From Podarcis muralis (taxonomy: Eukaryota), in contig NC_135667.1 in assembly GCF_964188315.1 (NCBI RefSeq), forward strand, positions 11,408,001-11,472,000: a stretch of DNA of 64,000 nt, read 5' to 3'. The notes below the pieces were generated by a model that was not told where the DNA came from, did no database searches, and worked only from the letters and a program-made list of their open reading frames with translations. Position numbers and translations under genes: made by a program. Below are positions 158 through 47,962 of the stretch, one piece after another (position 1 is the stretch's first letter; every line of letters starts with the position of its first letter).

Positions 158-255
158 TATATATCAATGACTGTCTAGTTTAAAGGACTATCCCACTGCT
201 TCTGTGGAATCTTTAAGTGAATCTTGCCTTATGTGTTTGAGAATTCATCTCATCC

Positions 256-2211
256 GACTTCCGGGTTAGCGCCATCGACTAATGGCGGATTCCCTCCGAG
301 CTCCAGAGGGAATCGGCTCTGTAGGAGACGGGTCCTGCCGCGGCGACGACACAGGGACCCTCAGAAACTACAGGCGCTGAAGCCTGTGGACCTGGTGACT
401 CGGCAGGCACCATTTGCGCCCCCCAACCCGCGAAGGAGCCTTTTTAAAGGCTTCGGAACGGGGGATGGGGTGAGCGGCGCGGTGCTGAGAGTCGACTGCT
501 TCTCCTGCGGAGTGAAGCCGCATGCCATGGTCGGAGAGCGCTGACTTCTTCCTTTGAACAATCGGACCTCAAAATCAACAACCCGTGAGTAGTACGGAAA
601 TTGGACTTCAAAGGAAAAATTTTTGAAAGGAAATTGGACTTGAAAGGAAAAATTTCTCTGAATTTGGCACGATCGGGGAAGGCGCAAAAAGGAAGTCCGT
701 CTCCCCGTCCTGTAAAAAATTCAAAGCAAGGAATAGATAACTAAGGTCGAGAGAACTTCTTCTTCTTTATTGGATAAAAGCCATTAATTTCACGATTTGG
801 CAGTATAAGTAATTTTACTGGAGGATAAGAGCCAATTTTGAGAGCTGAAGCGCCACCCCCCCGGACCCGGGAGTGATCCGCGAGAGAGCCTGTTGAGGAG
901 ATATAGAAGAGTTTGACAGCTGTCAAATTAGCTGTCAAAGCTGAAAAAAGAGAACTTTGTTTCTATTGTCTCTGCTGGTTATATTTGTTACAATTTAGTT
1001 ATAAATTGTTGAAAACAAGGAAGAACTGATACAAACTAACTTGACTTTTGGTTTTGAACTGGAAGGAATATTAAGCAACCAGAATCCCTCTAGAGGGGGT
1101 TTTCGGACATTACAAGAATGGCTGAAGGAGGAAAAATTCAGGCTAAATTGGACAGAGTGTTTCTTCTCTTGGGAAAGTTACAAGGCCAAAGTGATGTTTT
1201 GGCTACAAATGTTGCAACCCTGAACTCAACAGTAAATAAACTCATTGAATTTGATAAGGACTTGACTCAGGAAGTTTATGCAGCTGGACAAGAAGACAAA
1301 ATTGAGAACATTGAGAGAGTGGAGAAAGAGATATATGTTGTTCCAGAGGAAAGGGAAGGAGGAGCTGCAATGCTGCAAATGACAAAGGAGAGCCAGAGGC
1401 CTGTCAAGATGGATATAAAAGAAAATAAGAACTGGATGATGAAAATCTGGTTTGAGCTGGAGAATGAAGAATGGAGAGATCTCCTTATGGGGAGATCTGA
1501 AGACCTATGGATTACAAATCTGATCAAGGTGGAAGCTGGAGCTTTTGGGACATTTGGACTTAAAAGGGGCAAGAAACAAGATTTGGGCTCCACTTTTAAA
1601 TATGGAGGTCTGGCTGGAAGAAACATGGACCCTATCGGGACAGAGCTTCTCCGAGATTTGGTGTTTAATATAAAGGACTATCAAAAAAACCGGCAGAGAG
1701 GAATTGAAAGAGAATTAAGAGCCTCGGACGTGAGGTCTCCAGGCTGATAGCAGATAGACTAGTCAATGGACACTCGTTGGGGATCAGAACCGGGAAAGGG
1801 GTGGGGTGGGGTTTGGGAATCCAAAGGGTGTACAATTATATTCTGTTTCTTTTTATTCTGTTTTGTTATTAGTATAAAAATTGGGTAATTCGTGGACGGA
1901 ATTTGGGTCGACTTTAGAAAAGGGTTTTAAGAATGAGCACTGACGTACAAATATTGATGTTTATAAGTTAAAATTGGTTAACTAAAATGAATTAAATATA
2001 ATAAGGTTAAAAATTGGGGACAAGAACTTGTTAAACTAACAATTTTGAACTGGAATACAAGAAGGGGAGGTGTGGGGAAGTCAGGGAAATATGTTATTGA
2101 AAATAAGGATTGCAAACTTTATGTGTTTTTAACTTTTTTGTTTTCTTCTTTTTTGATTTTTTTTAAATGTATTGTGGAAAATCTCAATAAATATCTTAAA
2201 AAAAAAAAAAA
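256..2211 (+). mobile_element. Full-length non-autonomous L1-type retroelement (~1.96 kb, single ORF), copy 1
   Basis: 17-bp TSD GAGAATTCATCTCATCC (239-255, 2212-2228), 5' end GACTTCCGG, CpG-rich 5' region, ORF 1118-1747, AATAAA + poly-A. Confidence 0.85.
1118..1747 (+). CDS. 209-aa element-encoded protein with N-terminal heptad (coiled-coil) pattern, function unknown
   Basis: Homologous ORF in the copy at 18673-19301 (broken there by one frameshift); no recognisable RT or endonuclease motifs. Confidence 0.6.
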   Translation: MAEGGKIQAKLDRVFLLLGKLQGQSDVLATNVATLNSTVNKLIEFDKDLTQEVYAAGQEDKIENIERVEKEIYVVPEEREGGAAMLQMTKESQRPVKMDIKENKNWMMKIWFELENEEWRDLLMGRSEDLWITNLIKVEAGAFGTFGLKRGKKQDLGSTFKYGGLAGRNMDPIGTELLRDLVFNIKDYQKNRQRGIERELRASDVRSPG

Positions 2212-2244
2212 GAGAATTCATCTCATCCAACAGGGGTTTAGTGT

Positions 2245-2475: not shown

Positions 2476-3101
2476 TTGATAGATAGATGATAGATAGATA
2501 GATAGATAGATGATAGGTTTCAAAGCTGCTAGAAATGTTCAAAAATTGTTCATTTGTGCTATACTTTAATAAAATAGAATTGGTCTCTGCTCCAGCTAAA
2601 TCTTTGTCATTTTTGCATGGTAAAATCACAAATTTCATAGTCTGTTTTTTAGTAAACTAAAAATCCTCTGCTTATTTGGGGCTACCCCACATTTTCTTCG
2701 AAAAATTGCTTTGCTACCTTACAGTTATCAAAATTTTCAAAAGCAGGGGTTCCTTGGTTTAGCTCTTGAAAAATAGTGGAAACTCAGTAATTAGCTAATT
2801 AGCAACCACTGGTCTAATTAAATGCCAGTTGAAATACTGGAACAGTGCCAGTTTAAATAGCAGCGTATTTTTAGAACAATTATTAACCTTTCAAGTAGTT
2901 GCTGCTATTCTGTCACTTATGAAAGTCTGTGTAATCTAAAGTCTGTTTAGTGTAGGAAATAAAATAATTTAAGGTTAATCTTTCATGTATTTATTACTAT
3001 TAATTATTTACTTATAGATGAATGCCAACTCATATTATAGATCAATACAGCGCACAACACCGAATACTGCAAGGTGAACACTTTATAAGAGGAAACATTA
3101 C

Positions 3102-3977
3102 CTGCCAAGGCTCTACATTCTGAGAAGAGAGTCTGTCTCCACCTTTTGTCCTTTTGCTGATGGCTTCAGAGGAGTACCTAATATGTAAGGCCTGTGCCAG
3201 AGCATAGACAGCATTATAGATACTGTAGCTGTGACCGGTCAAGCTCATTTCAAAATATGGTGCAGGAAGGCTCTCCAGCATCTCCTCTCCAGTACATATG
3301 TCTGCTGACCCAGTGGAATTTGAAAGTGAACACATGAATGCTTGTTCCCAGAAATTATTGGTAAAACCATCCGCATCTGCCCAGGAAGGCTTTACATTCC
3401 TCAGAAAGTCTGAGAAGTCTTGAATGTCCTTGGAGTGAATGGCAAAGGAGAACGCACCATGGCATATTTGTATATTTATTTCAATGGGTTTTTTAAAAAA
3501 AGCTAATGAGAAATCAGTTTGGGCTGTTGTAATCCATACTTTTCCTACACGTTGCTTCCTCTTAGATGGAGGCAATAGCAGCTGAATCATATTCCTTGCC
3601 TCTATAGCAATAGTTACCCACAAAATAGATTCTCCATATATAACAACCACATTTGCTTTGCTTGACATGAAAGCTGGGGTCAAAATCCCTGTGTCATCCA
3701 ACATATCCAGGATGTTACCCGTGAAATGCAGATGGCAATCAACTTTTTCAGTGAATTCTGAACAGATTCCATTCTGGAAAAGCATTGGTTCAATGATCTG
3801 CAAGAAACGTTCTCCAGCTTCATTAATTGGAGTCATGAGCCCGACCCATTTCCATCCAAAATGCAGAAGTAACTGGATAATTCCCTTGAACTGAAGATCT
3901 TCATTGGGGACCATGCGGTAGAAGAAACCACGTTTGATTTGATCATTTGTGGCTGGTTCAAATGAACCATATGAAAT
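3102..3977 (-). CDS. V2R-A exon 3
   Basis: 876 bp open frame inside ORF 3042-4085, canonical splice sites. Confidence 0.92.
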
Positions 3978-6900
3978 CTGAAAAAGGAAAAATCCAAACC
4001 TTTCCATGTGAAAACAAGAATTCAAAACACACTCATTTATCTGAATATACATCCTGTATATCCCATATTTACTAATCTCCGCCATGGCGAACCCCCATTT
4101 ACATAGAAAATATATTGCTCAAAAACCAAACAAACAATATTTCTCATTTAATTTTGTAGATATTAATTCCTATTATTATGAGAGTCATCACAGATGCATA
4201 CTTGTACACAAGGATTATCTCCAGGAACAGGAGAGCTTTTATCCTTGCACTGCCTTCAACAATACTCTAAAGTGGACCAGGAGAAAGCAATTGATCAGGA
4301 TCTTAGTGTCTATAATCTTTAAAACACTTGTAGAGAGAGGTTGATGGCATTTGTACTAAGAACTCTGCTGGATCTCCTGGAAATCCTGAAGATTTCCTGG
4401 CCATTATGCATTTTATTATTATGTGACCACAATAAACCATATCCTATAAAAGTAAAATACCAGCAAATATTAAGGCAACTAAACAGAAGTCTAGTAATGC
4501 AGCAGAAGAACACCATATTGGTAACACTATATCCCTCCCCAAATGCCTCAAAAACAACAAGAAATTTGTTTTCGATTAGCCTCTGAAAATAGACAGTACT
4601 AAACATCATCATACGTATACAGGGAGGGGATCTTATGATTCCTAGGGAGAGGGACATTGTTGTCTCAAGTTATTTATGGATTTGTAAGCCAGCTTCAGGG
4701 GGACGTGGATGGCGCTGTGGTCGAAACTACTGAGCCTCTTGGGCTTGCCGATCAGAAGGTCGGTGGTTTGAATCCCCACGATGGGGTGAGCTCCAGTTGT
4801 TTGGTCCCAGCTCCTGCCAATCCAGCAGTTTGAAAGCATGCCAAAAAGTGCAAGTAGATAAATAGGTACTGCTCCAGCAGGAAGGTAAATGGTGTTTCCG
4901 TGCAGTGCTTTGGTTTCGCCAGAAGCGGCTTAGTCATGCTGGCCACATGACCTGCAAAAACTGTCTGTGGACAAACGCCGGCTCCCTTGGCCTGTAAAGC
5001 GAGATGAGCGCCGCAACCCCAGAGTTGTCTGTGACTGGACTTAACTGTCAGGGATCCTTTACCTTTACCTTTTTTTAAAAGCCAGCTTCATCACTATGAA
5101 TGGGGACTGGTATATCTCTCTCATGCAGCTTTCAGGAATGATGTAATGTGAAATTTATCAAACTGGAATATTCAAACAATTTCCCATTAAATATACTGTA
5201 CACACATTCTATGGAACCTGGGTCATTTCATGTACGTTGTTGGGTACTAATATTATACCCCCCAAAATATATCCATATATGGCAACCCATTTCCCTTTTC
5301 CATTTTACCACTTCATATTGATGTATCAACAGATTCCTATTGGAAGGAGAAAAGAGTGAATTATAATATGAAATACCAGTTTTTCAATACACATATTCTA
5401 CCTGTGGAATCTTGTAAAGACCTAAGACATCTGCCATGGATGAGGAGGTTTCAGAGCTAAGTCCCCCAATGACTCCTACTACATTTTTCTGAATGCCACA
5501 TATGTAGTTGGGGACAAAGTGATGTGATTTAAAGAGCAGATCCAGAGTGGTTCGGTAGGCCATCTTTGAATCAGAATAGCTATCATAGATGTGGAATCCA
5601 AGAGTGACATTGGGCAAGATCTTGGGATTCTCATTGATCTCATCAACAGCAAACACCAAGGCAAGGAGGTGTTGGTAGGACTTGGTCGTCACTCTGCAAA
5701 TAAAGTGCCTTATTATTTTATGGGCAATTAAACAGTGCACAACACCTAGATCTGAGGGATACAACTGCCTCAATTAAATTGTGTTGGAAATATAGAAATT
5801 GTTTTCTGCCTTTAGAGCTAATGTTTGGATCTCTCTTCCATCCGAGACAGATTTTTTCCCCTTTTCCGAACACATATATTGAGAAGTGATCTTCACTTGT
5901 TTTTCTAACCATGCTGCTTTTTATCACTAGCAACATGCGCCGTTATTGACATCATTAAAGGTAAAGGTACCCCTGCCCGTACGGGCCAGTCTTGACAGAC
6001 TCTAGGGTTGTGCGCCCATCTCACTCTATAGGCCGGGGGCCAGCGCTGTCCGCAGAGACTTCCGGGTCACTTGGCCAGCGTGACAAGCTGCATCTGGCGA
6101 GCCAGCGCAAAACACGGAACGCCGTTTACCTTCCTGCTAGTAAGCGGTCCCTATTTATCTACTTGCACCCGGAGGTGCTTTTGAACTGCTGGGTTGGCAG
6201 GCGCTGGGACCGAGCAACGGGAGCGCACCCCGCCGCGGGGATTCGAACCGCCGACCTTTCGATCGGCAAGCCATAGGCGCTGAGGCTTTTACCCACAGCG
6301 CCACCCGCGTCCCATTGACATCATTACTACACCCCTTTTGTCAGTTGTTGTCCCTAGCAAAGTAACTGGTATGAAATGAAAATAATTTAGATATCCCTTC
6401 AGTTTTATACCATCCTTCAACAAAGCAGCTGAAGCTGGTTTTCATAGCTTTTCTCTCTCCCCTTGCATACTCATGAAAGCCCCTAGGGTGTAGCTGGCCA
6501 AGTAAATGGAGATTTGAACCCTGATCTCCTCAATGCAAGGCTGCCATGTGATATTACTGTGGGCAGGAGGATCAATGACTAGAGAGCAAGTGGTGGTGAT
6601 CTGAAACAGAATCAGCTCAAACATGGTTGAGGTTTCATTTCTGTACCTGGTAATGGAAGGGAAGGGGCAGTGGTAAAGACAGCCTACTTCTTCACCACAA
6701 TTGTGTCCACAACTAGCTGCCTGGAAGAGCTTTTCAATGCTGAATATACACTTGTTATCTGGCCAGGAGAGCATTTTTCTTATAACGTTAGCAACCTCCT
6801 ATTATAACTTTAGAAACTCTTTAGGGATGGAATCAATCAGATTCAGAGTTGCATACCATGATTAGAGCCAGTCAAATGGTATTCACAAAAAGTGTCCTCT

Positions 6901-12386: not shown

Positions 12387-13288
12387 TTACATCTTTCTAC
12401 GTATCAGCTGCTCTCTGTTATTCAGCTCAGGCCTCACCACAATAATGTAGCATTTAGGGGAAAAGATGCAACCCAGCAGCCCAGCACTGGAAGCCAAGAT
12501 GGAGAAGATCTCCACAGCCACCATGTATTTCCCTCTGGTGCTCAAGTATGTGGGAATAAAGGAGAACCAAACACTGCAGAAGACCAGCATGCTGAAGGTG
12601 ATGAACTTGGCTTCATTGAAGCTGTCCGGCAACTTCCTGGCTAAGAAGGCCACAGTGAAGCTGATAATGGCCAGGAAGCCCATGTAGCCTAAAACAGCAT
12701 AGAACATTAGAACTGACCCCTCATTACATAAGAATATAATTTCTTCAGTCATTGAGTGCATGTCCACATCTGGGAATGGGGCAGAGGTTGCCAGCCAGAA
12801 GGCACAGATTCCCACTTGAATCACAGAGCAGGAAAGGACGATGGAGTAAGCCAGTTTTTTGCCTACCCACTTCCTGATTGTGGAATCTGGCTTGGTAGCC
12901 ATGAATGCCAAAACCACTGAAATCGTCTTGGCCAAGATGCTGGAGAGGGCCACAGAGAAGACAATACCAAAAGCCGTTTGTCGGAGTGGGCAGGTTGCCT
13001 TATTAGGCATTCCAATGAACATCAAGGAGCACAGGAAACACAAGAGGAGGGAGATGAGGAGAATGTAAGTGAGGCTTCTGTTATTGGCTTTGACGATGGC
13101 AGTGTCCCGGTGCTTAATGAAAATGCCAAGTACCATAGCTGTGATCAGAGAGAATAAAAGCGCAGAGAAAGTTGAAACAATGGTCAAAGTTTCCCCAAAG
13201 CCTAGGACGTGTGGTTTCTTGGGAATGCACTGATTCTGCTCTTCATTTGGATATTGCTCTGGAGGACATCTGGCACAGATTTCCAATC
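12387..13288 (-). CDS. V2R-B exon 6 (7TM)
   Basis: 902 bp, class C GPCR 7TM motifs, ends LIRRKM*. Confidence 0.95.
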
Positions 13289-16200: not shown

Positions 16201-19200
16201 GGTAGGAGCCAACCTGACACACAATTACGTAGAGGTGGAAGCCGCCCAGAGTGGCTAGGGAAACCCAGCCAGATGGGCGGGGTATAAAGAATAAATTATT
16301 ATTATTATATTATTATTATCATCCCAGCTTCTAGCATTCCAACTCGACACTAGAGTTACAAGAGGCACCAGAAGATTACAATGTTAGCAATCTATCTAAT
16401 GCTACTAACTGGAAAACCGCCTTGGACCAACAAGCATGTTGGACAACACTGTCTGATAGCCATTGGTCCTTCTTGGTGTGACATGCCTTCTGTGCATATT
16501 GCTCTTTTGATTACGTGGTTCATTTGTTATTAATATAATTATTAGTAGCATCATTATTAGTAGTGGCAGCAGCAGTTGGGCAGCACCTGCCCTCACAGTG
16601 ATTTCCTTACCTGAGTGAAGAGTCTGTGCCATTGGATTCCGTTCCCATTAATGATGAGTTCTTTGCCAGGAGGGGCCTGAGGATCCAGCTTTCCGACTTT
16701 GACCCTGACAAAGGAATTATTTGGGAAAGTGACCAGGTTTGCAATATCAAAGCCAGCTGCTATTTCTCCATGTTCATTCAATGTGATTTCATCCCCAGCA
16801 CTGCTATTGAATGAGATCCTTTGTAGCAATGAGTGGACCTAGGTGGAAAGAGAATCAGAAGGCCTAGAAAATGTTGTAATAGTCTTAAATCCCAGAAGGA
16901 TTTAAGTTATTTTTCTACAAGAGTTATCCACTTCAAGCAATCTTTTTTTATTACCATCGTAGACGAGCATAGGTAGGGTGGGGTACTGTCATATAAAATC
17001 TGTAAAATGGTTTGGAAAGCTAGAATCATAGAACCATAGAATCATAGAGTTGGAAGAGACCACAAGGGCCATCGAGTCCAACCCCCTGCCAAGCAGGAAA
17101 CACCATCAGAGCACTCCTGACATATGGTTGTCAGGCCTCTGCTTAAAGACCTCCAAAGAAGGAGACTCCACCACACTCCTTGGCAGCATATTCCACTGTC
17201 GAACAGCTCTTACTGTCAGGAAGTTCTTCCTAATGTTTAGGTGGAATCTTCTTTCTTGTAGTTTGGAGCCATTGCTCCGTGTCCGCTTCTCTGGAGCAGC
17301 AGAAAACAACCTTTCTCCCTCCTCTATATGACATCCTTTTATATATTTGAACATGGCTATCATATCACCCCTTCACCTCCTCTTCTCCAAGCTAAACATT
17401 AAAAGTATTTAAACAGAAGGCACCGTATTTTTCCATGTATAAGACGATGCTCGTCTTATATGTGGGTAGGCATATGCCCATGCACCCCTCAATATTCTGC
17501 AGCCAGAAGGGCTCTGGTGGGCCTGTCTGCTACAGCAGTGGATTCCTATGGAGCAGTGGGAACGGGCGATGAAGTCCCTTATAGACTCTGAAGGCTATTA
17601 GGAGATACCCTAAAAAGGCCTCTGAAAAGCCCGGAGGGGGCATTTGGGGCTCCTCCCAGTGTGTGACAACACATGGAGCATGTGACATCACACATGTGCA
17701 TGGGACACCCACAATGTGGGTAGGAACATGGTATATGTGGCCCCAAGCATCATTTTTGACAGCTTCAGATACATTCTACTTGGCACATTGATGCCATTAA
17801 CATCATACAACTAGTTGTCTAATTCAGTGGTTCACTTAGTGCTCTTTAAATTGGAGAGTGGGAGGGAGAAAAAGTTTTGTAGTTCTTTATGTCCTTGACC
17901 TCTGAAGGGCAGGTGTTATGCCGCGGCAACGACGCGGGGACCCTCAGAAACTACAGGCGCTGAAGCCTGTGGACCTGGTGACTCGGTGGGCACCATTTGC
18001 GCCCCCCGACCCGCGAAGGAGCCTTTTTAAAGGCTTCGGAACGGGGGACAGGGAGCGGTGCGGTGCTGAGAGTCGACTGCTTCTCCTACGGAGTGAAGCC
18101 GCATGCCATGGTCGGAGAGCGCTGACTTCTTCCTTTGAACTTTTGGACTAAAAGTATCAACCCGTGAGTAATACGGAAATTGGATTTATAAAAGGGAAAA
18201 TTTTTCTTTGGATTAGGCACAATCGGGGAAGGCGCAAAGAGGAAGTCCGTCTCCCCGCCTTGTAAACAACTTAAAGCAAGGACTAGATAACTAAGGTTGA
18301 GAGAACACCTTCTTCTTTGGTGGATAAACGTAATTAATTTCACGTTTTGGCAGTACAAGCGATCTTGCTGGAGGATAAGAGTTAACTTTGAAAGCGGAAG
18401 TGTCACCCCCCCGGGACCCGGGAGTGATCCGAGAGAGAGCCTGTTGAAGAGACATAGAAGATTTTGACAGCTGTCAAACTAGCTGTCAAAGCTGGGGGGA
18501 AAAAGAGAACTTTGTTTCTGTTTTCTTTGCTGGTTAGATTTGTTACAATCTGGTTATAAATTGTTGAAAACAAAGAAGAACTGAAACAAGTTCACTTGAT
18601 TTTTGGGTTGGAACTGGAAGGAATACTAAGTAACCAGAATCCCTCTAGAGGGGGTTCAGGGACATTACAAGAATGGCTGCAAGTGGAAAAATACAGGCTG
18701 AACTGGATAGGGTTTTCTTTCTCTTGGGAAAGTTACAAGGCCAAAGTGATGTTTCGGCTACAAATGTTACAACTCTGAATTCAACAGTAAATAAACTCAC
18801 TGATTTTGATAAGGACTTGACTCAAGAAGTCCATGCAGCTGAACAAGAAAAGAAATCTGAGAAATCTGAGAAAGTGGAGAAAGAGATACATGCTGATCCG
18901 GAGGAAAGGGAAGGAGGAGCTGCAATGCTGCAGATGATTAAGGAGAGCCAGAGGCCTGTCAAGATGGACATAAAGGAAAATAAGAACTGGATGATGAAAA
19001 TCTGGTTTGAATTGAAGAATAAGAATGGAGAGATCTCCTTATGTGGAGATCTGAAGACCTATGGATTACAAATTTGACCAAGGTGGAAGTTGGAGTTTTT
19101 GGGACATTGGGATTTAAAAGAAGCAAGAAACAAGATTTGGGCTCCACTTTTAAATATGGAAGTCTGGCTGGAAGAAACATGGACATTATTGGGACAGAGC

Positions 19201-22200
19201 TTCTCCGATATTTGGTGTTTAATATAAAGGACTATCAAAAAAACCGGCAGAGAGGAATTGAGAGAGAATTAAGAGCCTCGGACGTGAGGTCTCCAAGCTG
19301 ATAGCAGACTAAGACTGATGGACATTTGTTGGGGATCGAAACCGGGAAAGGGGGGGTGGGGTTTGGGAATCCAAAGGGTGTACAATTATATTTTGTTTCT
19401 TTTTATTCTGTTTTGTTATTAGTATAAAAATTGGGGAATTCGTGGAAGGGAATTGGGGTCGACCTTAGAAAAAGATTTTAAGAATGAGTACTGATGTATA
19501 AAGACTGATGTTTATAAGTTAAAATCGGTTATATAAAATGAACTAAATATAATAATGAACTAAATATAATAAGGTTAAAAATTGGGGATAAGAACTTGTT
19601 GAACTAATAATTGGAATTGGAATACAAGAAGGGGAGGCGTGGGGAAGTCATGGAAATAAGTTATTGAAAATAAGGTTTGTAAATGTTGAGGTTTTTTTTA
19701 AAAAAATTGTTTTTTCTTTTTTTCTTCCTTGAAAATTTCAATAAATATCTTTTTTTTTAAAAAAAATGAAGGGCAGGTGTTACCCAGGGAAGGCGTCACT
19801 ACCAAGAAGGCCCTCTGCCTGTTTCCTACTTAGATAGATGATAGATAGATAAATGACAGATGATAGATAGATAGATAGATGATAGATAGATGATGACACA
19901 TGACAGATGACAGATGACAGATGATAGATGATAGATGATAGATGATAGATGATGATAGATGATAGATAGATAGATAGAGCGAGCTAGATATATGGATAAA
20001 GGTTTTGAAGCTGCTAGAAATGTCAAAATTTGTTCATTTGTACTATGCTTTAATGGGGACGCGGGTGGCGCTGTGGGTAAAACCTCAGCACCTAGGACTT
20101 GCCGATCGTTAGGTCGGCGGTTTGAATCCCCGCGGCGGGGTGAGCTCCCATCGTTCGGTCCCAGCGCCTGCCAACCTAGCAGTTCGAAAGCACCCCCGGC
20201 TGCAAGTAGATAAATAGGGACCGCTTACCAGCGGGAAGGTAAACGGCGTTCCGTGTACTGTGCTGGCTCGCCAGATGCAGCTTTGTCACGCTGGCCACGT
20301 GACCCGGAAGTGTTTGCGGACAGCGCTGGCTCCCGGCCTATAGAGTGAGATGAGCGCACAACCCTAGAGTCTGGCAAGACTGGCCCGTACGGGCAGGGGT
20401 ACCTTTACTTTTTACCTTTACTATGCTTTAATAAAATTGAATTGGTCTCTGTTCCAACTAAATCTTTGTCATTTTTGCATGGTAAAATCACAAATTTNNN
20501 NNNNNNNNNNNNNNNNNNNNNNNNNNNNNNNNNNNNNNNNNNNNNNNNNNNNNNNNNNNNNNNNNNNNNNNNNNNNNNNNNNNNNNNNNNNNNNNNNNNN
20601 NNNNNNNNNNNNNNNNNNNNNNNNNNNNNNNNNNNNNNNAAAGGTTTTGAAGCTGCTAGAAATGTCAAAATTTGTTCATTTGTACTATGCTTTAATGAAA
20701 TTGAATTGGTCTCTGCTCCAACTAAATCTTTGTCATTTTTGCATGGTAAAATCACAAATTTTATGGTCTGTTTTTAGTAGACTAAAAATCCTCTACTTAT
20801 TTAGGGCTACCCCACATTTTCTTCTTAAAATTGCTTTGCTACCTTACAGTTATCAAAATTTTCAAAAGCAGGGGTTCCATGGTTTAGCTTTTGAAAAATA
20901 GTGGATCCTCACTAACTAGATAATTAGGAACCACTGGTCTAATTAAATGCCAGTTGAAATACTGGAACAGTGCCAGTTCTAAATGTTTAAACAGCAGCGT
21001 ATTTTTAGAACAATTATTAACCTTTCAAGTATTGGTTGCTATTCTGTCACTTAGGAAAGTTTGTGTAATCTAAAGTCTGTTTAGTGTAATTGTAGGAAAT
21101 AAAATAATTTAAGGTTAATCTTTCATGTATATATTACTTTCAGTTAGTTACTTATAGATGAATGCCAACTCACATTATATATCAGTACAGCACACAACAC
21201 TGAATACTTTGCAAGGTGAACACTTTATAAGTTACCTGCCAAGGCTCTACATTCTGAGAAGAGAGTCTGTCTCCACCCTTTATCCTTTTGCTGATGGCTT
21301 CAGAGGAGTACCTAATATGTAAGGCATGTGCCAGAGCATAGACAGCATTATAGATACTGTAGCTGTGACCGGTCATGCTCATTTCAAAATATGGTGCAGG
21401 AAGGCTCTCCAGCATCTCCTCTCCAGTACATATGTCTGCTGACCCAGTGGAATTTGAAAGTGAACACATGAATGCTTGTTCCCAGAAATCATTGGTAAAA
21501 CCATCCGCATCTGCCCAGGAAGGCTTTACGTTCCTCAGAAAGTCTGAGAAGTCTTGAATGTCCTTGGAGTGAATGGCAAAGGAGAACGCACCATGGCATA
21601 TTTGTATATTTATTTCAAAGGGTTTTTTAAAAAAAGCTAATGAGAAATCAATTTGGGCAGTTGTAATCCATACTTTTCCCACATGTTGCTTCCTCTTAGA
21701 TGGAGGCAATAGCAGCTGAATCATATTCCTTGCCTCTATAGCAATAGTTACCCACAAAACAGATTCTCCATATATAACAACCACATTTGCTTTGCTTGAC
21801 ATGAAAGATGGGGTCAAAATCCCTGTTTCACCCAGCATATCCAGTATGTTACCAGTGAAATGTGGAAGTTCTTCATTTTTATCTGTGAATTCTGAACAGA
21901 TTCCATTCTGGAATAGCATTGGTTCAATGATCTGCAAGAAACGTTCTCCAGCTTCATTATTTGGAGTGATGAGCCCGACCCATTTCCAACCAAAATGCAG
22001 AAGTAACTGGATAATTCCCTTGTACTGAAGATCTTCATTGGGGACCATGCGGTAGAAGAAACCACGTTTGATTTGATCATTTGTGGCTGGTTCAAATGAA
22101 CCATGTGAAATCTGAAAAGGAAAAAGTCAAACCTTTCCATGTGAAAACAAGAATTCAAAACACACTCATTTATCTGAATATACATCCTGTATATCCCATA

Positions 22201-25200
22201 TTTACTAATCTTAGACATGGCGAACCCCCATTTACATAGAAAATATATTGCTCAAAAACCAAACAAACAATATTTCTCATTTAATTTTGTAGATATTAAT
22301 TTGATTATTATCGGAGTCATCACAGCTGCATACTTGTACACACAGATTCTCTCCAGGAACAGGAGAGTTTTTATCCTTGCACTGTCTTCAACAATACTCT
22401 AAAGTGGACCAGGAGAAATACAAGCTATTGATCAGGATCTTTTTGTCTATAACCTTTAAAACACTAGTAGAGAGAGGTTGATGGCATTTCTACTAAGAAC
22501 TCTTGTGGGAGGATCTCCTGGAAATCTCCTGGAAATTAGTTAAGGCAACTAATATGAAGTCAAGTAATGCAGCAGAACAACACCATATTGATAAGAATAC
22601 ATCCATTCCCAAATGCCAGAAAGATAACAAGAAATTTGTTTTCGATTAGCTTCTGAAAATGGACAGTACTAAACATCATCATACGTACACATGGAGTGGA
22701 TCTTATGATTCCTAGGCTGAGAGACATTGTTGTCTCAAGTTATTTATGGCTTTGTAAGCCAGCTTCAGGGGGACGTGGGTGGCGCTGTGGTCTAAACCAC
22801 TGAGCCTCTTGGGCTTGCTGATCAGAAGGCCGGTGGTTCGAATCCCCGCAACGGGGTGAGCTCCAGGTGTTTGGTCCCAGCCCCTGCCAACCCAGCAGTT
22901 CGAAAGCACGCCAAAAAGTGCAAGTAGATGAATAGGTACTGCTCCGGCAGGAAGGTAAACAGTGTTTCCGTGCACTGCTCTGGTTTCGCCAGAAGCGGCT
23001 TTGTCATGGTGGCCACATGACCCGGAAAAACTGTCTGTGGACAAACGCCGGCTCCCTCGGCCTGTAAAGCGAGATGAGCGCCGCAACCCCAGAGTTGTCT
23101 GTGACTGTACTGTCAGGGATCCTTTACCTTTACCTTTTTTTAAAAGCCAGCTTCATCACTATGAATGGGGACTGGTATACCTCTCATGCAGCTTTCAGGA
23201 ATGATGCAATGTGAAATTTATCAAACTGGAATATACAAACAATTTTCTATTAAATATACTGTACACACATTCTATAGGACCTGGGTCATTTCATGTACAT
23301 TGTTGGGTACTAATATTATACCCCCCAAAATATATCCATATGTGGCAACCCATTTCCTTTTTCCATTTTACCACTTCATATTGATGTATCAACAGATTCC
23401 TATTGGAAGGAGAAAAGAGTGAATTATAATATGAAATACCAATTTTTCAATACCCATATTCTACCTGTGGAATCTTGGAAAGACCTAAGACATCTGCCAT
23501 GGATGAGGAGGTGTCAGAGCTAAGTCCCCCAATGACTCCTACTACATTTTTCTGAATGCCACATTTGTAGTTGGGGACAAAGTGATGTGATTTAAAGAGC
23601 AGATCCAGAGTGGTTCGGTAGGCCATCTTTGAATCAGAATAGCTATCATAGATGTGGAATCCAAGAGTGACATTGGGCAAGATCTCGGGATTCTCATTGA
23701 TCTCATCAACAGCAAACACCAAGGCAAGGAGGTGTTGGTACAACTTGGTCGTCACTCTGCAAATAAAGTGCCTTATTATTTTATGGCCAATTAAACAGTG
23801 CACAACACCTAGATCTGAGGGATACAACTGCCTCAATTAAATCATGTTGGAAATATAGAAATTGTTTTCTGCCTTTGAGCTAATGTTTGGATCTCTCTTC
23901 CATCCGAAACAGATTTTTTTACTTTTCTGAACACATAGATTGAGAAGTGATCTTCACTTGTTTTTTCAACCATGCCACTTTTTATCACTAGCAATATGCA
24001 CCGTTATTGACATCATTACTAAACCCCTTTTGTCAGTTGTTGTCCCTAGCAAAACAAACAAATGAAAATAAAGAAATTTAGATATAGCTATATGGGATTG
24101 AATGGGACGCAGGTGGCGCTGTGGGTTAAAGCCTCAGCACCTAGGACTTGCCGATCGAAAGGTCGGCGGTTCGAATCCCTGCGGCGGGGTGCGCTCCTGT
24201 CGTTCGGTCCCAGCGCCTGCCAACCTAGCAGTTCGAAAGCACCCCCGGGTGCAAGTAGATAAATAGGGACCGCTTACTAGCGGGAAGGTAAACGGTGTTC
24301 CGTGTGCTGCCCTGGCTTGCCAGAGCAGCGATGTCACGCTGGCCACGTGACCCGGAAGTGTCTGCGGACAGCACTGGCTCCCGGCCTATAGAGTGAGATG
24401 AGCGCACAACCCTAGAGTCTGGCAAGACTGGCCCGTACGGGCAGGGGTACCTTTACCTTTATATGGGATTGACTGGTAGTGCAGACTTTGATACTATAGC
24501 ACCCTGGGCAAGGCCAAAATTTTGCTCCCGCTTGGCCCTTCCAAAAGGAGGGTATAGCTGTGCCAGGCTTAAGGAAGGAGACACAAGGCTCGCTTGGGTA
24601 GGATCCAAGAGCCCCCCTCCCCCCCCGGTTCCCAAAGCTGGGGAACTGCTAACTAGGCTTTGGGAAGGAAGCAGAAGGACTCCAGGACCTCGTCAGAGCC
24701 CATGACTCCTTCCCAAAGCCAAGTGCCTTGCTTAGCAGGTTAGGGGACAGCACTCCAATGGCTCTGTGTCCAATGTGTGCACACTGCTCGCAGATCTTAA
24801 ACATCACCCTTGTGTCTACTGAGGTCTAGCGAGTGAACTATGCTTCATTGGAGGATAGAGAGATACCATGTATCTTGAAGCAGGTTACAAAATAGTCTTA
24901 TAAAATCTTATTATTGGCTTTAATCTTCCATTGGGTTTCAAAGCAAACCAAGTGCTTTATAGTCAGATACAATTGTAGAAAGAATAAATGAAATGATCTT
25001 AAGAGCCCTTTACTTACATTGGGCTGTTAATAAAGGCCCGATATGGGTGTTCATCGAAGGAAATGCTGGGCAATAGGTAATAGATATGAGACACTATCCC
25101 ACCAATGATAAGGTCACCTTGTTCATACCACTCATGTGGAATATGCACAGGATTATTTCCGCTGCAAACAACCGTATGCACTTGGGGCACCATATTGGGA

Positions 25201-32400: not shown

Positions 32401-35400
32401 TACAAAGTCAATGTATAGAGTCTGGTGTCATTTTACAAAAAGAAATATTTCCAATATTTTTCCAATGACCTTTTAAAAAAATATGATTTTGTAGGCAACT
32501 AATGCTTACAAGTTATGGATTGAAAAAAAATGGAAAGATTTGTTAAACTATGGCAGCCGAGATACTCTCAACATATGCAAAAGAATCTCTCCATCCTTCA
32601 TATACAAGGAAATGGGAATGAGATTTATCAAATATTGGTTTAACAATCCTAAAAGCAAAAGGGATGTGGGCATTAAAGTATTGTAAATATGTTTATTACT
32701 TTGAACCTGAAATAGTCAATATCCAAATGGTACTTAAATTTACATTTTATTTATTTATTTATTTTGCACAAACAGGCATTGTTTGAGGTATAACTCAATT
32801 AAGGTAAATCTAATAAATATCTGTTGAAATTTTAAATAATATTGCCATTGAATAGAAAATCAAAAAGTTTGAAACGGGGCCATGGAACAGAAACTCAAAA
32901 AGTTTGCATCTTGTAACCAGTGACTTTCTCCTTGACCATCGGCTCCTGTCCTCCTTGGTCTGTCTATCTACCTTCTTATCTGAATCCCTCCTTCACTTAC
33001 CGCCTTCCTTCCTTCCTTCCTTCCTTCCTTCCTCTGCTGCCCCCCCCCCCACTCTCCAAGTCCTTCTTGGCAGTCTGCTCACACTTATAATAGTGCCACT
33101 GGGCAATTGGGGATGCAGAACCACGCAGATCCTCTGATGACCAATGGCAGCAGCTGGATTCCTCCACTGAGGCACAGAGAGGATCATTCATGCCTTGCCC
33201 AGCAGCCCATGGAGTACATCAAGGGGCAGCTGGGCTCTTAGCCACTCTGAGCAGGGCGTGATTTTGGAGGCTCCTTCTGGGCCTGGGCCCGTGGCAGGGG
33301 CCAACCTGGCAAACAACAACATACACCCCTGCTTCTATCATTCCAACTCAACAATAGTGTCACAAGCAGTATCAAAGAAAACTCATGAAGATTACAATGT
33401 TCATTCACAATGATACAGTTAGCTTAGCATTCTATCTAATGCCACTATGTAGAGAGCTGCCTTGAACAAACAAACATGTTGGACAACACTGTCTGATAGC
33501 CACTGGTCCTTCTTGGTGTGACATGTCTTTTGTGTATATTGCTCTTTTTATGATGTGGTTCATTTGTTTATTTATTAATCAAATTATTAGTAGCAGCATT
33601 ATTAATAGTGGCAGCAGCAGTTGGCAGCACTTCCCTTTTCATCTCATATGGCAAAACTACACGCTCTCCCACTTGTGTGCAGTGATTTCCTTACCTGGGT
33701 GAAGGCTCTGTGCCATTGGATTCTGTCCCCATTTATGGTGAGCTCTTTGCCAGGAGGGGCCTGGGGATCCAGCCTTCCGACTTTGACCCTGATATATGAA
33801 TTATTCGGGAAAGTGACCAGGTTTGTAATATCAAAGCCAGCTGCTAATTTCCCATGTTCATTTAATGTAATTTCATCCCCAGCACTGTTGTTGAATGAGA
33901 TTCTCTGCAGCAATGAGTGGAGCTAGGTGGAAAGAGAATCAGAAGGCCCATCAAATGTTGTAATAGTCTTACAAAGATAAATAGCTTTCCTAGAAGGATT
34001 TAAGTTATTTTCCTCCAGGAGTTATCCACTTCAATCAATATTTCTTTATTACTGTTGTAGACCAACATAAGTAGGGTGGGGTACTGTTATTTAAAACCTG
34101 TAAAATGTTTTGGAAAGCTAAAAAGTATTAAAACAGAAGGTACCGTATTTTTCCATGTATAAGACGATACTCGTCTTATATGCGGATAGTGAATGCAGAA
34201 GGGGGATGTGCGATTAATGGCAGCAGCAAGCAGGGGATTGGCTGTGGCTGCGGCAGTTGGGCAGATGATTGGCGGTTGCAACAAGTGGGCAGGTGGGCTG
34301 TTGGTGGCGGTGAACAGGCAGACAATTGATGGCTGTGGTGAGGTGTGTGATTGGCAGGGGCTGTGGTAAGCGATTGGCAGTGGTGGACAGGCGGGTGAGC
34401 GATTGGCAGAAGTGACCCCCCCCCCCTAAAAGCTAAACAACTTAATTTCTTAATTTTGGGTTTAAAAATATAGGGGTTGTCTTATATATGGAGCGTCTTA
34501 TACATGGGAAAATACGGTATATGAAAAAGTATATAAGAAGCTAAAAGAAGCTAAAAGAAAGGTTAGGAGCATTAAATGTGTGCGGAAGAACATGAAAGAT
34601 TAGTATATAAAAGACTATGGTTATCAATTTACAGAACACTTTGATATGAGTGTTCATTAAATCTGGTCTGTGGCACAGGTTAACCACTTCAGTTCATATT
34701 GGAGAGAAGCCAAATTTCAGTGGTAGGTACAGGAAGAGAGGAAAATCATGAATCAGCATAAACTTAGCAGTCAAGAGACTTCCACGAAGAAGAAGAAGAA
34801 GAAGAAGAAGAAGAAGAAGAAGAAGAAGAAGAAGAAGGAAGAAGAAGAAGAAGTAGAGTAGTTTGGAGTTGATATTCTGCCTTTCACTACCCTAAGGAGT
34901 CTCAAAGCGGTTAACAATCTCATTTCCCTTCCTCCTCACAACAAACACTCTGTGAGGTGAGTGAGGCTGAGAGATTTCAGAGAAGTGTGACTAGCTGAAG
35001 GTCACCCAGCATCTGCATGTGGAGGAGCGGGGAAGTGAACCCAGTTCACCTGATTACGAGTCCACCGCTCTTAACTGCTACACCATGCTGAAAAATATAT
35101 AATAGAGGCATAAGGCTATAGACCTGCTTGTTTCAGATCACCCTTTGTAAATAATTAAGAATTGGAAGGGATTTGAGTTGATGTTCTGGAGACTGAACCC
35201 ACCCTGGTCATGCTGGTCAATGATTTCTGGTGGGACAGAGGTGAAACCTGGTCCTGCNNNNNNNNNNNNNNNNNNNNNNNNNNNNNNNNNNNNNNNNNNN
35301 NNNNNNNNNNNNNNNNNNNNNNNNNNNNNNNNNNNNNNNNNNNNNNNNNNNNNNNNNNNNNNNNNNNNNNNNNNNNNNNNNNNNNNNNNNNNNNNNNNNN

Positions 35401-38400
35401 NNNNNNNNNNNNNNNNNNNNNNNNNNNNNNNNNNNNNNNNNNNNNNNNNNNNNNNNNNNNNNNNNNNNNNNNNNNNNNTAGGTTTAGAAGCTGCTAGAAA
35501 TGTCTAAATTTGTTCACTTGTACTTTACTTTAATAAAATTGAATTTGTCTCCGCTCCAACCAAAACTTTGTCATTTTTGCATGGTAAAATCACAAATTTT
35601 ATGGTCTGTTCTTTAGTAGACTTAAAATCCTTTGCTTCTTTTGGACTACCCCACATTTTCTTCAAAACATTGGTTTGCTACCTACAGTTATCAAAATTTT
35701 CAAAAGCTGGAGTTCCATGCTTTAGATTTTGAAAAATAGGGGGTTCTCAGTAATTAGCTAATTGGAAATCACTGGTCTAATTAAATGCCAGTTGTAAGAC
35801 TGGAACAGCGCCAGTTTTTAATCTTTAAATAGCAGTGAATTTTCCAAACTATTATAAACCTTTCAAGTAGTTGCTGCTATTCTGTCACTTATGAAAGTCT
35901 GTGTAATTTAAAGTCGGCTTAGTATAATTATAGGAAATAAAATAATTTAAGGTTAATCTTTCATGTATTTATTACTTTTAATTATTTAGGTAGGTAGCCA
36001 TGTTGGTCTGACGAAGTAGAAATATATATAAAAAATTATCTAGTAGCATCTTAGAGACCAACTTAGTTTGTTCTTGGTATGAGCTTTTGTTTGCATGCAC
36101 GCTTCTTCAGATACACATCAGATACACTTCTTTTAACTATTAAGGGTTAAGTATTTAATTCGTTCCGGAGGTCCGTTCTTAACCTGAAACTGTTCTTAAC
36201 CTGAAGCACCACTTTAGCTAATGGGGCCTCCTGCTGCCGCCACACCACTGGAGCACGATTTCTGTTCTCATCCTGAAGCAAAGTTCTTAACCTGAAGCAC
36301 TATTTCTAGGTTAGCGGAGTCTGTAACCTGAAGCGTATGTAACCTGAAGCGTATGTAACCCGAAGCACCACTGTAGATGAATGCCAACTCACATTATATT
36401 ATCAACACAGTGCAGAACACTGAATACTTTGCAAGGTGAACATTTTATAAGAGGAAACATTACCTGCCAAGGCTCTACATTCTGAGAAGAGAGTCTGTCT
36501 CCACCCTTTATTCTTTTGCGGATGGCTTCAGATGAGCACCTAATATGTAAGGCCTGTGCCAGAGCATAGACAGCATTATAGATACTGTAGCTGTGACTGG
36601 TCATGCTCATTTCAAAAAATGGTGCAGGAAGGCTCTCCAGCAACTCCTCTCCAGTACATGTGTTTGCTGACGCAGTAGAATTTAAAAGTGAACAACTGAA
36701 TGCTTGTTCCCAGAAATCACTGATAAAACCATCTGCATCTGCCCAGGAAGGCTTTACACTCCTTAGAAAGTCTGAGAAGTCTTGAATCTCCTTGGAGTGA
36801 ATCGCAAAGGAGATAGCACCATGGAACATTCGTATATTAACCTTCACCATTTTTTCAAAATAATATAATATGAAATCAGTTTGGGCTGTTGTAATCCATA
36901 CTCTTCTTTCAGGTTGCTTCCTCTTAGATGGAGGCAATATCAGTTGAATTGTATTCCTTACCTCTATAGCACATGACAACCATAAAATAGATGTACTTTC
37001 TCCATATATAACAATTGCATTTGCTCTGCTTGCCATGAAAGCTGGGGACAAAATCCTTATGTCACCCAGCATATCAAATACGCTACCAGTGAAACGCATA
37101 TTGTTTTCACTTTTTTCTGTGAATTCTGAACAAATTCCATTCTTGAAAAGAATTGGTTCAATGTTCTGAATGAAACGTTCTCCAGCTTCGTTATCTGGAG
37201 TGATGAGCCCGACCCATTTCCATCCAAAATGCAGAAGTAACTGGATAATTCCCTTGTACTGAAGATCTTCACTGGGGACCATGCGGTAGAAGGAAGCAAC
37301 TTTGCTTCGATCATTTGTGGCTGGTTCAAATGAACCATATGAAATCTGAAAAATAAAAAAAGCCAAACCCATCCAAGTGGAAACAAGAATTCACAACACA
37401 CTCATTTATCTGAATATAAATCCTTTATATCTCATATTTCCTAATCTTAGACAGGGCCGACCCCCATTTACATAGAAAATATATTGCTCATTTATTATTG
37501 CAGATATTAATTCCTATTATTATGGGAGTCATCACAGCTGCATACTTGTACACACAGATTCTCTCCAGGAACAGGAGAGCTTTTATCCTTGCACTGCCTT
37601 CAACAATACTCTAAAGTGGACCAGGAGAAAGACAAGCAATTGATCAGGATCTTTTTGTCTATAATCTTTAAAACACTTGTAGAGAGAGGTTGATGGCATT
37701 TCTACTAAGAACTCTTGTGGGAGGATCTCCTGGAAATCCTGTACATTTCATGAATATTGTACATTTTATTTTTCTTTGACCACAATAAACCATATCCTAT
37801 AAAAGTAAAATACCAGCTAAAATTAAGGCAACCAATATGAAGTCCAGTAATGCAGCAGAAAACACCAAATTGGTAGCACCATATCCCTCCCCAAATGCCA
37901 GAAAAAATAACAAGAAATTTGTTTTCGATTAGCCTCTGAAAGTGTATAGTATTAAACATCACCATACATATACAGGGAGTGGATCTTATGATTCCTAGGG
38001 AGAGGGACATTGTTGTCTCAAGTTATTTATGGCTTTGTAATCCAGCTTCAAGGGGATGCAGGTGGCGCTGTGGTCTAAACCACTGAGCCTCTTGGGCTTG
38101 CAGTTCAGAAGAGTTAAAGTAAATTACCAAACCTTCAATTCCAGCATGCGCCAGGCCACCTAAATTAAGTAATTGGGTATTTGATTGATTCATATTGGAA
38201 CTGATGTTATAATTTGGTATTGATACGAGGTGTATATTGGAATTTTGTATTTGAAAACTGATAAAATTATATTTTAAAATTAATGATAATATGTCCCTTT
38301 TATCAAACTGAAACTTTTTGAATAATCCTCCATTAAATATATTATATAAACTTTCTTTAGAACCTAGGTCCTTTCATGTATATTTTTGGGTACTAATATT

Positions 38401-46134: not shown

Positions 46135-47962
46135 CAGTGGTGCCTCGCAAGACGAAATTAATTCGTTCCGCAAGTTTTTTCTTCTTGCGAGTTTTTCGTC
46201 TTGCGAAGCACGGTTTCCCATAGGAATGCATTGAAAATCAATTAATGCGTTCCTAGGGAAACCGCTTGCCAGGCTGGCGGTGCGGAGAAGGGCTTTTCTC
46301 CCCACCGCAAGCCTTCAGCACAGGTACGGGAACAGAGGGGAAGGCACGCAGCGCTTTCCCTCTGTTCCCGGGGCTTGCGTGGGAGGAGGGTTTTTCCTCC
46401 CCACCGCCAACATTCAGAACAGCATTCTGAATGTTGGCGGTGGGAAGGAAAACCCTTCTCCCACCCCAAGTCTTCAGGACAGCCATCCGAAGGCTGGCGC
46501 GGGGAGAAGGTCTCTCCGCCCCCCCCCCACGCCAGGCTTCGGTGCATCCTTCAGAGGCTGCTGCCATAGTCACGCGTCACTTCTCCAGCTGGGAGAGGGT
46601 CGCGGGGCTATGGCTTCTTTAGCCCCGCGCGCGCTCTCCCGGCTGGAGAGGTGACGCTCGGCTATGGAGGCTCCTGCCATAGGCGCGCGTCACCTGGGAG
46701 AGGGTCGCGGGGGGCTGCTTTAGCCCCGCGCGCGCTCTCCCGGCTGGAGAGGTGACGGGCGCCTATGGAGGTTCCTGCCATAGGCGCGCGTCACTTCTCC
46801 AGCTGGGAGAGGGTCGCGGGGGGCTGGTTTAGCCCCGCGCGCGCTCTCCCGGCTGGAGAGGTGACGGGCGCCTATGGAGGCTCCTGCCATAGGCACGCGT
46901 CACTTCTCCAGCTGGGAGAGGGTCGCGGGGGGCTGGTTTAGCCCCCCGCGCGCTCTCCCGGCTGGAGAGGTGACGGGCACCTATGGAGGTTCCTGCCATA
47001 GGCGTGCGTCACATCTCCAGCTGGGAGAGGGTCGCGGGGGGCTGGTTTAGCCCCGCACGCGCTCTCCCGGCTAGAGAGGTGACGGGCGCCTATGGAGGCT
47101 CCTGCCATAGGCGCGCGTCACTTCTGCAGCCGGGAGAGGGTCGCGGGGGGCTGGTTTAGCCCCGCGCGCGCTCTCCCGGCTGGAGAGGTGACGGGCGCCT
47201 ATGGAGGTTCCTGCCATAGGCGCGCGTCACTTCTGCAGCCGGGAGAGGGTCGCGGGGGGCTGGTTTAGCCCCGCGCGCGCTCTCCCGGCTGGAGAGGTGA
47301 CGGGCGCCTATGGAGGCTCCTGCCATAGGCGCGCGTCACTTCTCCAGCTGGGAGAGGGTCGCGGGGGGCTGGTTTAGCCCCGTGCGCGCTCTCCCGGCTG
47401 GAGAGGTGACGGGCGCCTATGGAGGTTCCTGCCATAGGCGCGCGTCACATCTCCAGCCGGGAGAGGGTCGCGGGGGGTTTCTTTAGCCCCGCGTGCGCTC
47501 TCCCGGCTGGAGAGGTGACGGGCGCCTATGGAGGCTCCTGCCATAGGCGCGCGTCACTTCTCCAGCCGGGAGAGGGTCGCGGGGGGCTGGTTTAGCCCCG
47601 CGACCCTCTCCCGGCTGGAGAGGTGACGGGCGCCTATGGAGGCTCCTGCCATAGGCGCGCGTCACTTCTCCAGCCGGGAGAGGGTCGCGGGGGGCTGGTT
47701 TAGCCCCGCGTGCGCTCTCCCGGCTGGAGAGGTGACGGGCGCCTATGGAGGTTGCTTCGCCGCCAGGCTTCGGAGGAGGTCCGAGGACAGTGGGGAAGAC
47801 GCGCTGCGCTTCCCCGCTGTCCCGGAGATTTCCCTATGGGCTTTCGTCTTGCGAAGCAAGCCCATAGGGAAATTCGTTTTGCGAAGCGCCTCCAAAACGG
47901 AAAACCCTTTCATCTAGCAGGTTTTCCGTCTTGCGAGGCGTTCGTCTTGCGGGGTACCACTG
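46135..47962. mobile_element. 1.83-kb Tigger-like non-autonomous DNA transposon carrying an internal minisatellite
   Basis: TIR CAGTGGTGCCTCGCAAGACG / CGTCTTGCGGGGTACCACTG, TA TSD; empty site CTTCATATACAAGG in C (~32600) and E (~57637). Confidence 0.88.
46572..47750. repeat. GC/CpG-rich tandem array, 109-bp unit, about 11 copies
   Basis: TCACTTCTCC recurs at 46791 and 46900 and onward; the unit is two hairpins. Confidence 0.92.

Follow-up and report, generated by a model that had tools for sequence, protein, structure and literature searches.

Is a retroelement of about 2 kb, with a single short gene and no enzyme of its own, a broken copy of something larger, or does it belong to a family that propagates in this form, and where would its gene have come from? 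These questions are raised by a locus in Podarcis muralis (NCBI RefSeq assembly GCF_964188315.1, contig NC_135667.1). By "the window" we mean the whole analysed stretch of 64,000 nucleotides (nt), positions 11,408,001 to 11,472,000 of the forward strand; all coordinates given without a locus name refer to it. An earlier note, made from the sequence alone, described at 256-2211 a non-autonomous element of the L1 type with one open reading frame (ORF) and regarded it as an L1 parasite with its own shortened ORF1-like or novel protein. According to our computational analysis, this element (copy A) is probably a full-length member of a lizard family of the HAL1 type, i.e., a non-autonomous L1 family with a reduced ORF1 protein (ORF1p). 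The reading of the earlier note is thereby supported, and of its two options a shortened, strongly diverged ORF1p is favoured over a novel protein.

Copy A is a retroposed unit of 1,956 bp that is bracketed by a perfect 17-bp repeat, as can be read directly from the sequence. It consists of the following parts.

239-255, plus strand: 5' target-site duplication (TSD) of copy A, GAGAATTCATCTCATCC; the same 17-mer stands at 2212-2228.
256-1117, plus strand: L1-type 5' untranslated region (UTR) and putative internal promoter region, 862 nt, with homology to L1 5'UTRs of Podarcis lilfordi.
596-650: 17-nt tandem repeat in the leader, unit GGAAATTGGACTTGAAA, about 3.3 repeats in copy A (TRF).
1118-1747, plus strand: the single ORF of 209 amino acids (aa) and a stop codon, its product being called mini-ORF1p below; identified from the ORF list, family relatives, substitution rates (dN/dS) and profile links.
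1748-2197, plus strand: 3'UTR of 450 nt, with the proximal ~115 nt family-specific and the distal ~350 nt (about 1863-2197) L1-like.
2186-2191, plus strand: AATAAA, from the sequence.
2198-2211, plus strand: poly(A) tail of 14 A, from the sequence.
2212-2228, plus strand: 3' TSD of copy A, a 17/17 match to 239-255.

The first bases of copy A are GACTTCCGG (256-264). An ETS-like motif, ACTTCCGG, is located at 257-264 and a YY1-like motif, AATGGCGG, at 281-288. The ratio of observed to expected CpG is 0.88 in the leader versus 0.21 in the flank, and G+C-richness is limited to the first 305 nt of the leader (256-560, 62%), the remainder having 40% G+C. The 17-bp TSD, both motifs, the CpG-rich leader of about 860 bp, the single ORF, AATAAA and the poly(A) tail had all been listed in the earlier note and are present as described. 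Its statement that copy A encodes neither reverse transcriptase nor endonuclease also agrees with our data: Pfam is blank for the ORF, there is no other long ORF, and only one ORF of at least 60 aa has a coding signal. A search of positions 1-2600 with Rfam found no RNA families. Copy A is a young, complete and recently inserted member of its family.

Both ends of the element are homologous to L1. Over its first ~500 nt copy A shows 63-79% identity to L1 5'UTRs from Podarcis lilfordi, and it has the 5' terminus in common with them; over the first ~370 nt the identity is 73-77% to Podarcis L1s that bear the domains Exo_endo_phos and RVT_1. All family and L1 copies start at the same (G/A)ACTTCCGG, with AATGGC invariant. 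One of these L1s, L009:3433-9453 of Podarcis lilfordi, is near-complete (Exo_endo_phos, 4.9e-11; RVT_1, 5.7e-36). Its ORF1 carries RNLRLRAVPE, and its ORF2 matches human LINE-1 ORF2p at 3.9e-105 and R2 at about 1e-21. Compared with copy A, the first 373 nt of this L1 are 73% identical and the last ~240 nt 65%. Within the first 380 nt the identity between the family and L1 (65-77%) is not below the identity of one L1 lineage to another (67-68%). The distal ~350 nt of the 3'UTR are 62-70% identical by blastn to the 3' ends of L1s in L002, L008 and L009, and the shared portion includes the GGAATACAAGAAGGGGAGGTGTGGGGAAGTCA block, a T-rich run and AATAAA. (L002 is a 20-kb Podarcis lilfordi locus around CAI5779343, and L009 was reached via a protein related to a fusion ORF in L002, described below.) Judging by these alignments, the termini and the UTRs of copy A derive from L1.

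The window contains another insertion of the same structure (copy B), found by blastn and tblastn.

17903-17918, plus strand: 5' TSD of copy B, TGAAGGGCAGGTGTTA, repeated at 19767-19782.
17919-19766, plus strand: copy B, 5'-truncated, beginning from about element position 81.
19767-19782, plus strand: 3' TSD of copy B, a 16/16 match.

Copy B is 86% identical to copy A overall (5'UTR 88%, ORF 91%, 3'UTR 87%). Its ORF (18673-19301) is frameshifted by a 1-bp deletion near 19020/19021; read through with X, the protein has 85% aa identity to that of copy A. The earlier claim that a second diverged copy keeps the same protein thus holds for the sequence and fails for the reading frame. The target of copy B is known from a neighbouring copy of the same interspersed repeat, which is uninterrupted at about 2412-2428 and represents a paralogous empty site. 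The differing TSDs, the differing sites and this uninterrupted site rule out that copies A and B are one orthologous or paralogous insertion. There are therefore two independent insertions in the window, both without ORF2 and both with TSDs (17/17 and 16/16), poly(A) and AATAAA. The nick sites on the bottom strand, TCTC/AAAC and TTCA/GAGG, are loosely Y-rich/R-rich. At the 5' junction of copy B (17900-17918 versus 317-335) the target, CTCTGAAGGGCAGGTGTTA, shares microhomology with CTCTGTAGGAGACGGGTCC, the stretch of the element that immediately precedes the truncation point, as would fit 5' joining assisted by microhomology. The 17-nt tandem array of the leader is shorter in copy B than in copy A.

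The protein of copy A has few relatives in sequence collections, and they form a family of their own. A word-index protein search returned one relative of 176 aa, an exact look-up of the 209-aa protein in public assemblies returned nothing, and comparisons with Pfam, PDB sequences and the ESM Atlas returned nothing meaningful. When 1.84 billion representatives were searched exhaustively with a profile, 11 clusters at 50% identity were obtained, all of 129-215 aa; proteins as long as ORF1p or ORF2p were absent from the result, as were any ORF1p at E<=0.001 and any related protein of host length or with a name. Ten of the 11 clusters come from short, lizard-type Logan contigs, the exception being CAI5779343.1, a "hypothetical predicted protein" of Podarcis lilfordi. 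In the family contigs the ORF is followed by a related 3'UTR of ~450 nt, AATAAA and poly(A). ORF2 is absent from every one of them, and no part of the family ORF matches ORF2. A diverged and broken family copy is also found at L002:8930-10723 in Podarcis lilfordi.

An alignment of 17 sequences shows that the N-terminal ~55 and the last ~35 residues are conserved, with a variable and indel-tolerant middle. The most conserved part of the family is the C-terminal tail:

1643-1744, plus strand: codons 176-209, basic C-terminal tail, ending in ...RASDVRSPG.

Across the 17 sequences A202, S203, D204, P208 and G209 are invariant, R179, K186, R192 and R206 are near-invariant, and every family protein ends in ...RASD(V/L)R.PG. 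The ratio of non-synonymous to synonymous rates (dN/dS) is 0.39 between copy A and the dead copy B (36 non-synonymous and 21 synonymous changes; p=0.004). All seven subfamily ORFs compared at the DNA level are intact, and their pairwise dN/dS is 0.2-0.7 at a dS of 0.6 to >1.3. Purifying selection on the family ORF is evident from these substitution patterns. The earlier note had named a dN/dS near 1 and long, ORF2-bearing copies as signs against its own reading; the ratios are 0.2-0.7, and among the retrieved relatives no long copies of the family with ORF2 were seen. By its sequences, this is a propagating, deeply diversified ORF2-less family rather than a one-off product.

Where the protein comes from was addressed by comparison with lizard L1 ORF1p. 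The references were P0023 (370 aa, UniRef "L1 transposable element RRM domain-containing protein"), P0024 and the ORF1 of L009:4385-5432. Aligned by hhalign with four lizard ORF1p, the family alignment gives one colinear alignment (P=7.6e-4). When the alignments are split, the N-half matches the N-half (P=0.027) and the C-half the C-half (P=0.0094), versus 0.65 and 0.21 for the crossed pairs. A hidden Markov model (HMM) of lizard ORF1p scores 18.7 bits with the family member P0005, aligning HMM positions 81-212 to residues 22-148, and none of 2000 local-composition shuffles exceeds 8.7. In the reverse direction, an HMM of the subgroup of the window protein gives 22.9 bits for P0023 and 21.1 bits for P0024; shuffled sequences (1000) reach at most 13.9, and reversed ones come out near 0. 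When family proteins are compared with L1 loci by tblastn, P0005 and P0009 fall at the ORF1 locus, with a weak E of about 0.6. The link to ORF1p is drawn through family profiles and an intermediate member because the window protein alone scores marginally.

1199-1579, plus strand: codons 28-154, stretch colinear with L1 ORF1p (coiled coil, degenerate ribonucleoprotein (RNP) motif, first half of the RRM), from hmmsearch and hhalign.

Mini-ORF1p and lizard L1 ORF1p have in common an N-terminal MA-DGK (MA(A)DGK in the family, MADGK in L1), a long coiled coil and colinear similarity into the first half of the RRM. The helix and the strand after the RNP site align, DFWQQDLGEEEFKIVSAFRLGRG versus DLWITNLIKVEAGAFGTFGLKRG (DLWITNL...FGTFGLKRG versus DFWQQDL...VSAFRLGRG). 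The differences are considerable. Lizard L1 ORF1p has an N-terminal basic/Ser-rich region of ~50-90 residues, which mini-ORF1p lacks. At the RNP site the family has a degenerate vestige, whereas lizard L1 has KEKQTNLRIRAVPELE (NLRIRAVPE). An intact RRM with a motif of the RxxNLRIxGxPE type was not found in mini-ORF1p: the motif is degenerate, Pfam is blank and the first half of the RRM alone aligns. The absence of RxxNxRxxG(I/L)PE, pointed out from the sequence beforehand, is confirmed in this form. The second half of the RRM and the C-terminal domain (CTD) are represented by at most a weak vestige; for the CTD there is a colinear but non-significant match of -2.3 bits (HMM 146-177 versus ORF1p 260-294). 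Mini-ORF1p has nothing that corresponds to about 150 residues of ORF1p, and its C-terminus is different: for the conserved tail of the family no counterpart was found in L1 ORF1p. At the family level the ORF appears to be a strongly reduced descendant of ORF1; this descent is less firm for some of its segments, and taken by itself the window protein is linked to ORF1p weakly.

1124-1285, plus strand: codons 3-56, N-terminal coiled coil (AlphaFold2 helix; modelled parallel homotrimer).

The N-terminal part of the protein is also where structure prediction is informative. AlphaFold2 with 17 sequences predicts a helix at residues 2-71, with a predicted local distance difference test (pLDDT) of 78-89 over residues 1-40 and a mean of 47 overall; with 2 sequences the pLDDT is 31. 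Three copies of residues 1-75 are modelled as a parallel in-register trimer with an ipSAE of 0.76, whereas the highest-scoring of three controls has 0.01. At least 84% of contacts recur between runs, the partner pLDDT is at least 74, and the contacts are made by a/d heptad positions in residues 3-56. The a/d heptad pattern that had been noticed at the N-terminus by eye therefore recurs both in the predicted helix and in the modelled contacts. When this score was calibrated, using two copies and largely microbial proteins, 21 of 30 solved homo-pairs and none of 23 single chains reached the mark. The model supports, short of proof, self-association of mini-ORF1p as a trimer.

Several observations weigh against the HAL1-type reading presented above. 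In BLASTP the window protein is not significantly similar to L1 ORF1 (E=3.1 and 0.084), and the similarity is best in the coiled coil. The hhalign probability is 25%, and against the ORF1p HMM the window protein alone scores 4.4 bits, a value that is reached by 12 of 2000 shuffles. Coiled-coil composition can inflate profile scores, even though local-composition shuffles and reversed sequences stayed below the scores reported here. AlphaFold2 gives no confident fold past residue ~55, and no RRM-like structure was confirmed. In the leader, the last ~360 nt are 46-62% identical to L1, versus 46% for a shuffled control, and the L1s used in the comparison belong to Podarcis lilfordi and not to the genome of copy A. 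Finally, promoter use, transcription, translation, RNA binding and trimerisation in vivo are all steps that we infer. An alternative is that the family is mobilised by L1 and that its ORF does not come from ORF1, but was captured as a fragment from the host or arose de novo between L1 ends. The blanks in Pfam, PDB sequences and the ESM Atlas would fit such an origin, as would the marginal similarity of the window protein alone, the lack of an ORF1p match to the family that passes library-wide significance in the exhaustive profile search (none at E<=0.001) and the lack of an ORF1p counterpart for the most conserved part, the C-terminal tail. However, true lizard ORF1p (P0023, P0024, L009:4588-5307) are also unmatched in Pfam (Transposase_22) and PDB sequences, with coiled-coil noise only; therefore such blanks for the window protein carry no weight. 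Pfam also missed the deleted-L1 fusion ORF described below and C-terminal fragments of ORF2. Moreover, the reciprocal colinear profile matches beat all 1000-2000 composition-preserving shuffles, hhalign matches cognate halves only, and the start residues are common. We consider a non-ORF1 origin of the ORF improbable.

Two other explanations concern the element as a whole. Copies such as A and B might be sporadic, internally deleted L1s, dead on arrival and without a self-propagating lineage. Such products do exist. At L002:5348-7485 (OX395132), 1.4 kb from the family copy in this locus, there is a 2.1-kb element with the same 5' terminus, an L1 5'UTR and 3'UTR and poly(A). Its ORF of 268 aa is an in-frame fusion of the coiled-coil N-terminus of ORF1 to the C-terminal zinc-knuckle region of ORF2, and is 72-77% identical to Podarcis proteins that are named in UniRef "reverse transcriptase zinc-binding domain-containing" (ORF2 C-termini). 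Because its ORF joins an ORF1 N-terminus to an ORF2 C-terminus, this element is a one-off internally deleted L1. It resembles copy A in its L1 5' terminus, its 3' end, its length of about 2.1 kb and its one ORF, and both ends of copy A are likewise common with L1; in contrast, the ORF of copy A contains no portion of ORF2 and is a member of a diversified family. Two independent insertions of the same ORF2-less structure in one window, and eleven 50%-identity clusters of one architecture with intact ORFs and dN/dS <1, make sporadic deletion a very improbable source of the family. The last explanation, processed retrocopies of an ordinary host mRNA for a small coiled-coil protein, is the most remote of all. 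A processed pseudogene would also have a TSD, poly(A), AATAAA and a single ORF, and a start of the ETS/YY1 type recalls housekeeping promoters. Here, though, the 5' end coincides with the L1 5' terminus to the base, homology to L1 UTRs covers ~500 nt of the leader and ~350 nt of the trailer, the 1.84 billion representatives include no host relative that is longer or annotated, and there are many diverged subfamilies, all with UTRs. The L1 UTRs, the absence of host relatives and a family with intact ORFs led us to reject both a host retrogene and a one-off deleted L1.

For a HAL1-type family with a reduced ORF1p, the following life cycle can be proposed. Transcription would start from an L1-type internal promoter at the exact 5' end, with its ETS-like and YY1-like motifs and CpG-rich head. 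The leader has a property that would be relevant for translation. In the 590 nt before the ORF (528-1117, sense strand) there is no ATG, versus 12.2 expected, and none of 2000 shuffles has a count as low. A like depletion is observed in copy B, in two further subfamilies and in an autonomous L1 (L009:3433-4384), with L003 and L002:8930-9744 also almost free of ATG; on the reverse complement of the leader it was not found. Selection for cap-dependent scanning towards the first ORF would leave a leader free of ATG, and the depletion suggests such selection. The long AUG-free leader would let scanning ribosomes arrive at the one ORF. Its product would be a 209-aa descendant of L1 ORF1p that has kept the trimer-forming coiled coil and an RRM vestige, no longer has the RNP motif or the larger part of the CTD, and has gained a conserved basic C-terminal tail. 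Through the trimeric coiled coil and the basic tail, mini-ORF1p would probably coat or mark its own RNA. The ORF2p of L1 would be captured at the poly(A) and the L1-like 3'UTR of the element RNA, and target-primed reverse transcription in trans by ORF2p of autonomous L1s would produce the 16-17-bp TSDs, the poly(A) tails and the occasional 5' truncation. That the family obtains its copying enzyme from full L1s in this way is what we infer from the poly(A) tail, TSDs of 16-17 bp, nick sites with a loose Y-rich/R-rich character and the L1-like 3'UTR.

A more specific and rather doubtful possibility is that mini-ORF1p is a specialised hijacking factor. Its coiled coil might co-assemble with L1 ORF1p or trimerise on the parasite RNA, and the near-invariant basic tail might replace the RRM and the CTD, either binding RNA or recruiting L1 ORF2p or a host factor. 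If so, mini-ORF1p would represent a minimal, previously undescribed ORF1 architecture that is sufficient for L1-dependent retrotransposition, and the family would be the first HAL1-type lineage outside mammals.

The surroundings of the two copies are made up of receptor genes and repeats.

3045-4085, minus strand: ANF_receptor exon (7e-19).
12390-13286, minus strand: 7tm_3 exon (1e-82).

Both copies are on the plus strand and lie antisense in apparently equivalent introns of tandem minus-strand genes for class-C G-protein-coupled receptors (V2R-type). The exon-bearing tandem units are 10-18 kb long, with repeats at about 21.1, 36.4, 51.5 and 61.7 kb. Short interspersed elements (SINEs), tRNA-derived by eye (GGGACGCGGGTGGCGCTGTGGG...), are present in many copies (1-150 on the minus strand, 20051-20250, 24100-24299, 61131-61330 and others), one of which abuts the 5' flank of copy A. 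At 46582-47861 a 109-bp unit is repeated in tandem at least 10 times, and runs of N occupy 20498-20639 and 35258-35478.

The family is of practical importance for annotation, as it yields "hypothetical protein" gene models (such as CAI5779343.1, Podarcis lilfordi) that need masking as transposable elements. Since lizard L1 ORF1p escapes Pfam Transposase_22, domain scans miss ORF1 and blanks are uninformative in these genomes. Two "TRIM39-like" gene models of Podarcis muralis, P0025 and P0026, are 63% identical to the N-terminus of L1 ORF1 over about 65 residues, probably because a piece of a transposable element was annotated as part of a TRIM gene or has become exonised in one. In a wider sense, the family would be a natural deletion experiment on ORF1p, in which selection has retained the coiled coil together with a new basic tail, while the canonical RNA-binding motif has been discarded along with most of the CTD. 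It bears on the minimal requirements for ORF1p in cis-preference and RNP formation, and on the access of non-autonomous RNAs to ORF2p.

The closest known systems are the HAL1 elements of mammals. These are non-autonomous L1 derivatives that code for ORF1p only and have several origins in mammals, as outlined in PMC5753468 (with Smit 1999 and Bao & Jurka 2010 as the primary sources cited there). The lizard family resembles them in its L1-derived ends, an ORF1-derived gene as the only gene, the lack of ORF2, propagation as a family, insertion hallmarks of the L1 type and an independent origin from the local L1. By its L1 termini and UTRs, the absence of ORF2, descent from ORF1 (at the family level) and family propagation, it shares those defining features of HAL1 that sequence can reveal. 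It differs in having a lacertid-type host, so its origin is independent of the mammalian lineages. Full-text searches of the literature found no report of HAL1-like elements in lizards. An independent and deeply diversified lizard lineage would show that the ORF1-only strategy recurs wherever L1 is active. The two lineages also differ in the protein. Mammalian HAL1 encodes a recognisable full ORF1p, whereas the ORF1p of the lizard family appears to have been cut from about 370 to 209 aa and to have a new conserved C-terminal tail. A more distant parallel is HeT-A of Drosophila telomeres, a non-LTR element of the Jockey clade that has only a gag-like ORF1 and uses the reverse transcriptase of TART/TAHRE. 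Like the lizard family, HeT-A keeps the first ORF only and borrows its reverse transcriptase in trans; unlike it, HeT-A belongs to another LINE clade, is telomere-specific and benefits its host, and no sequence relation between the two is expected.

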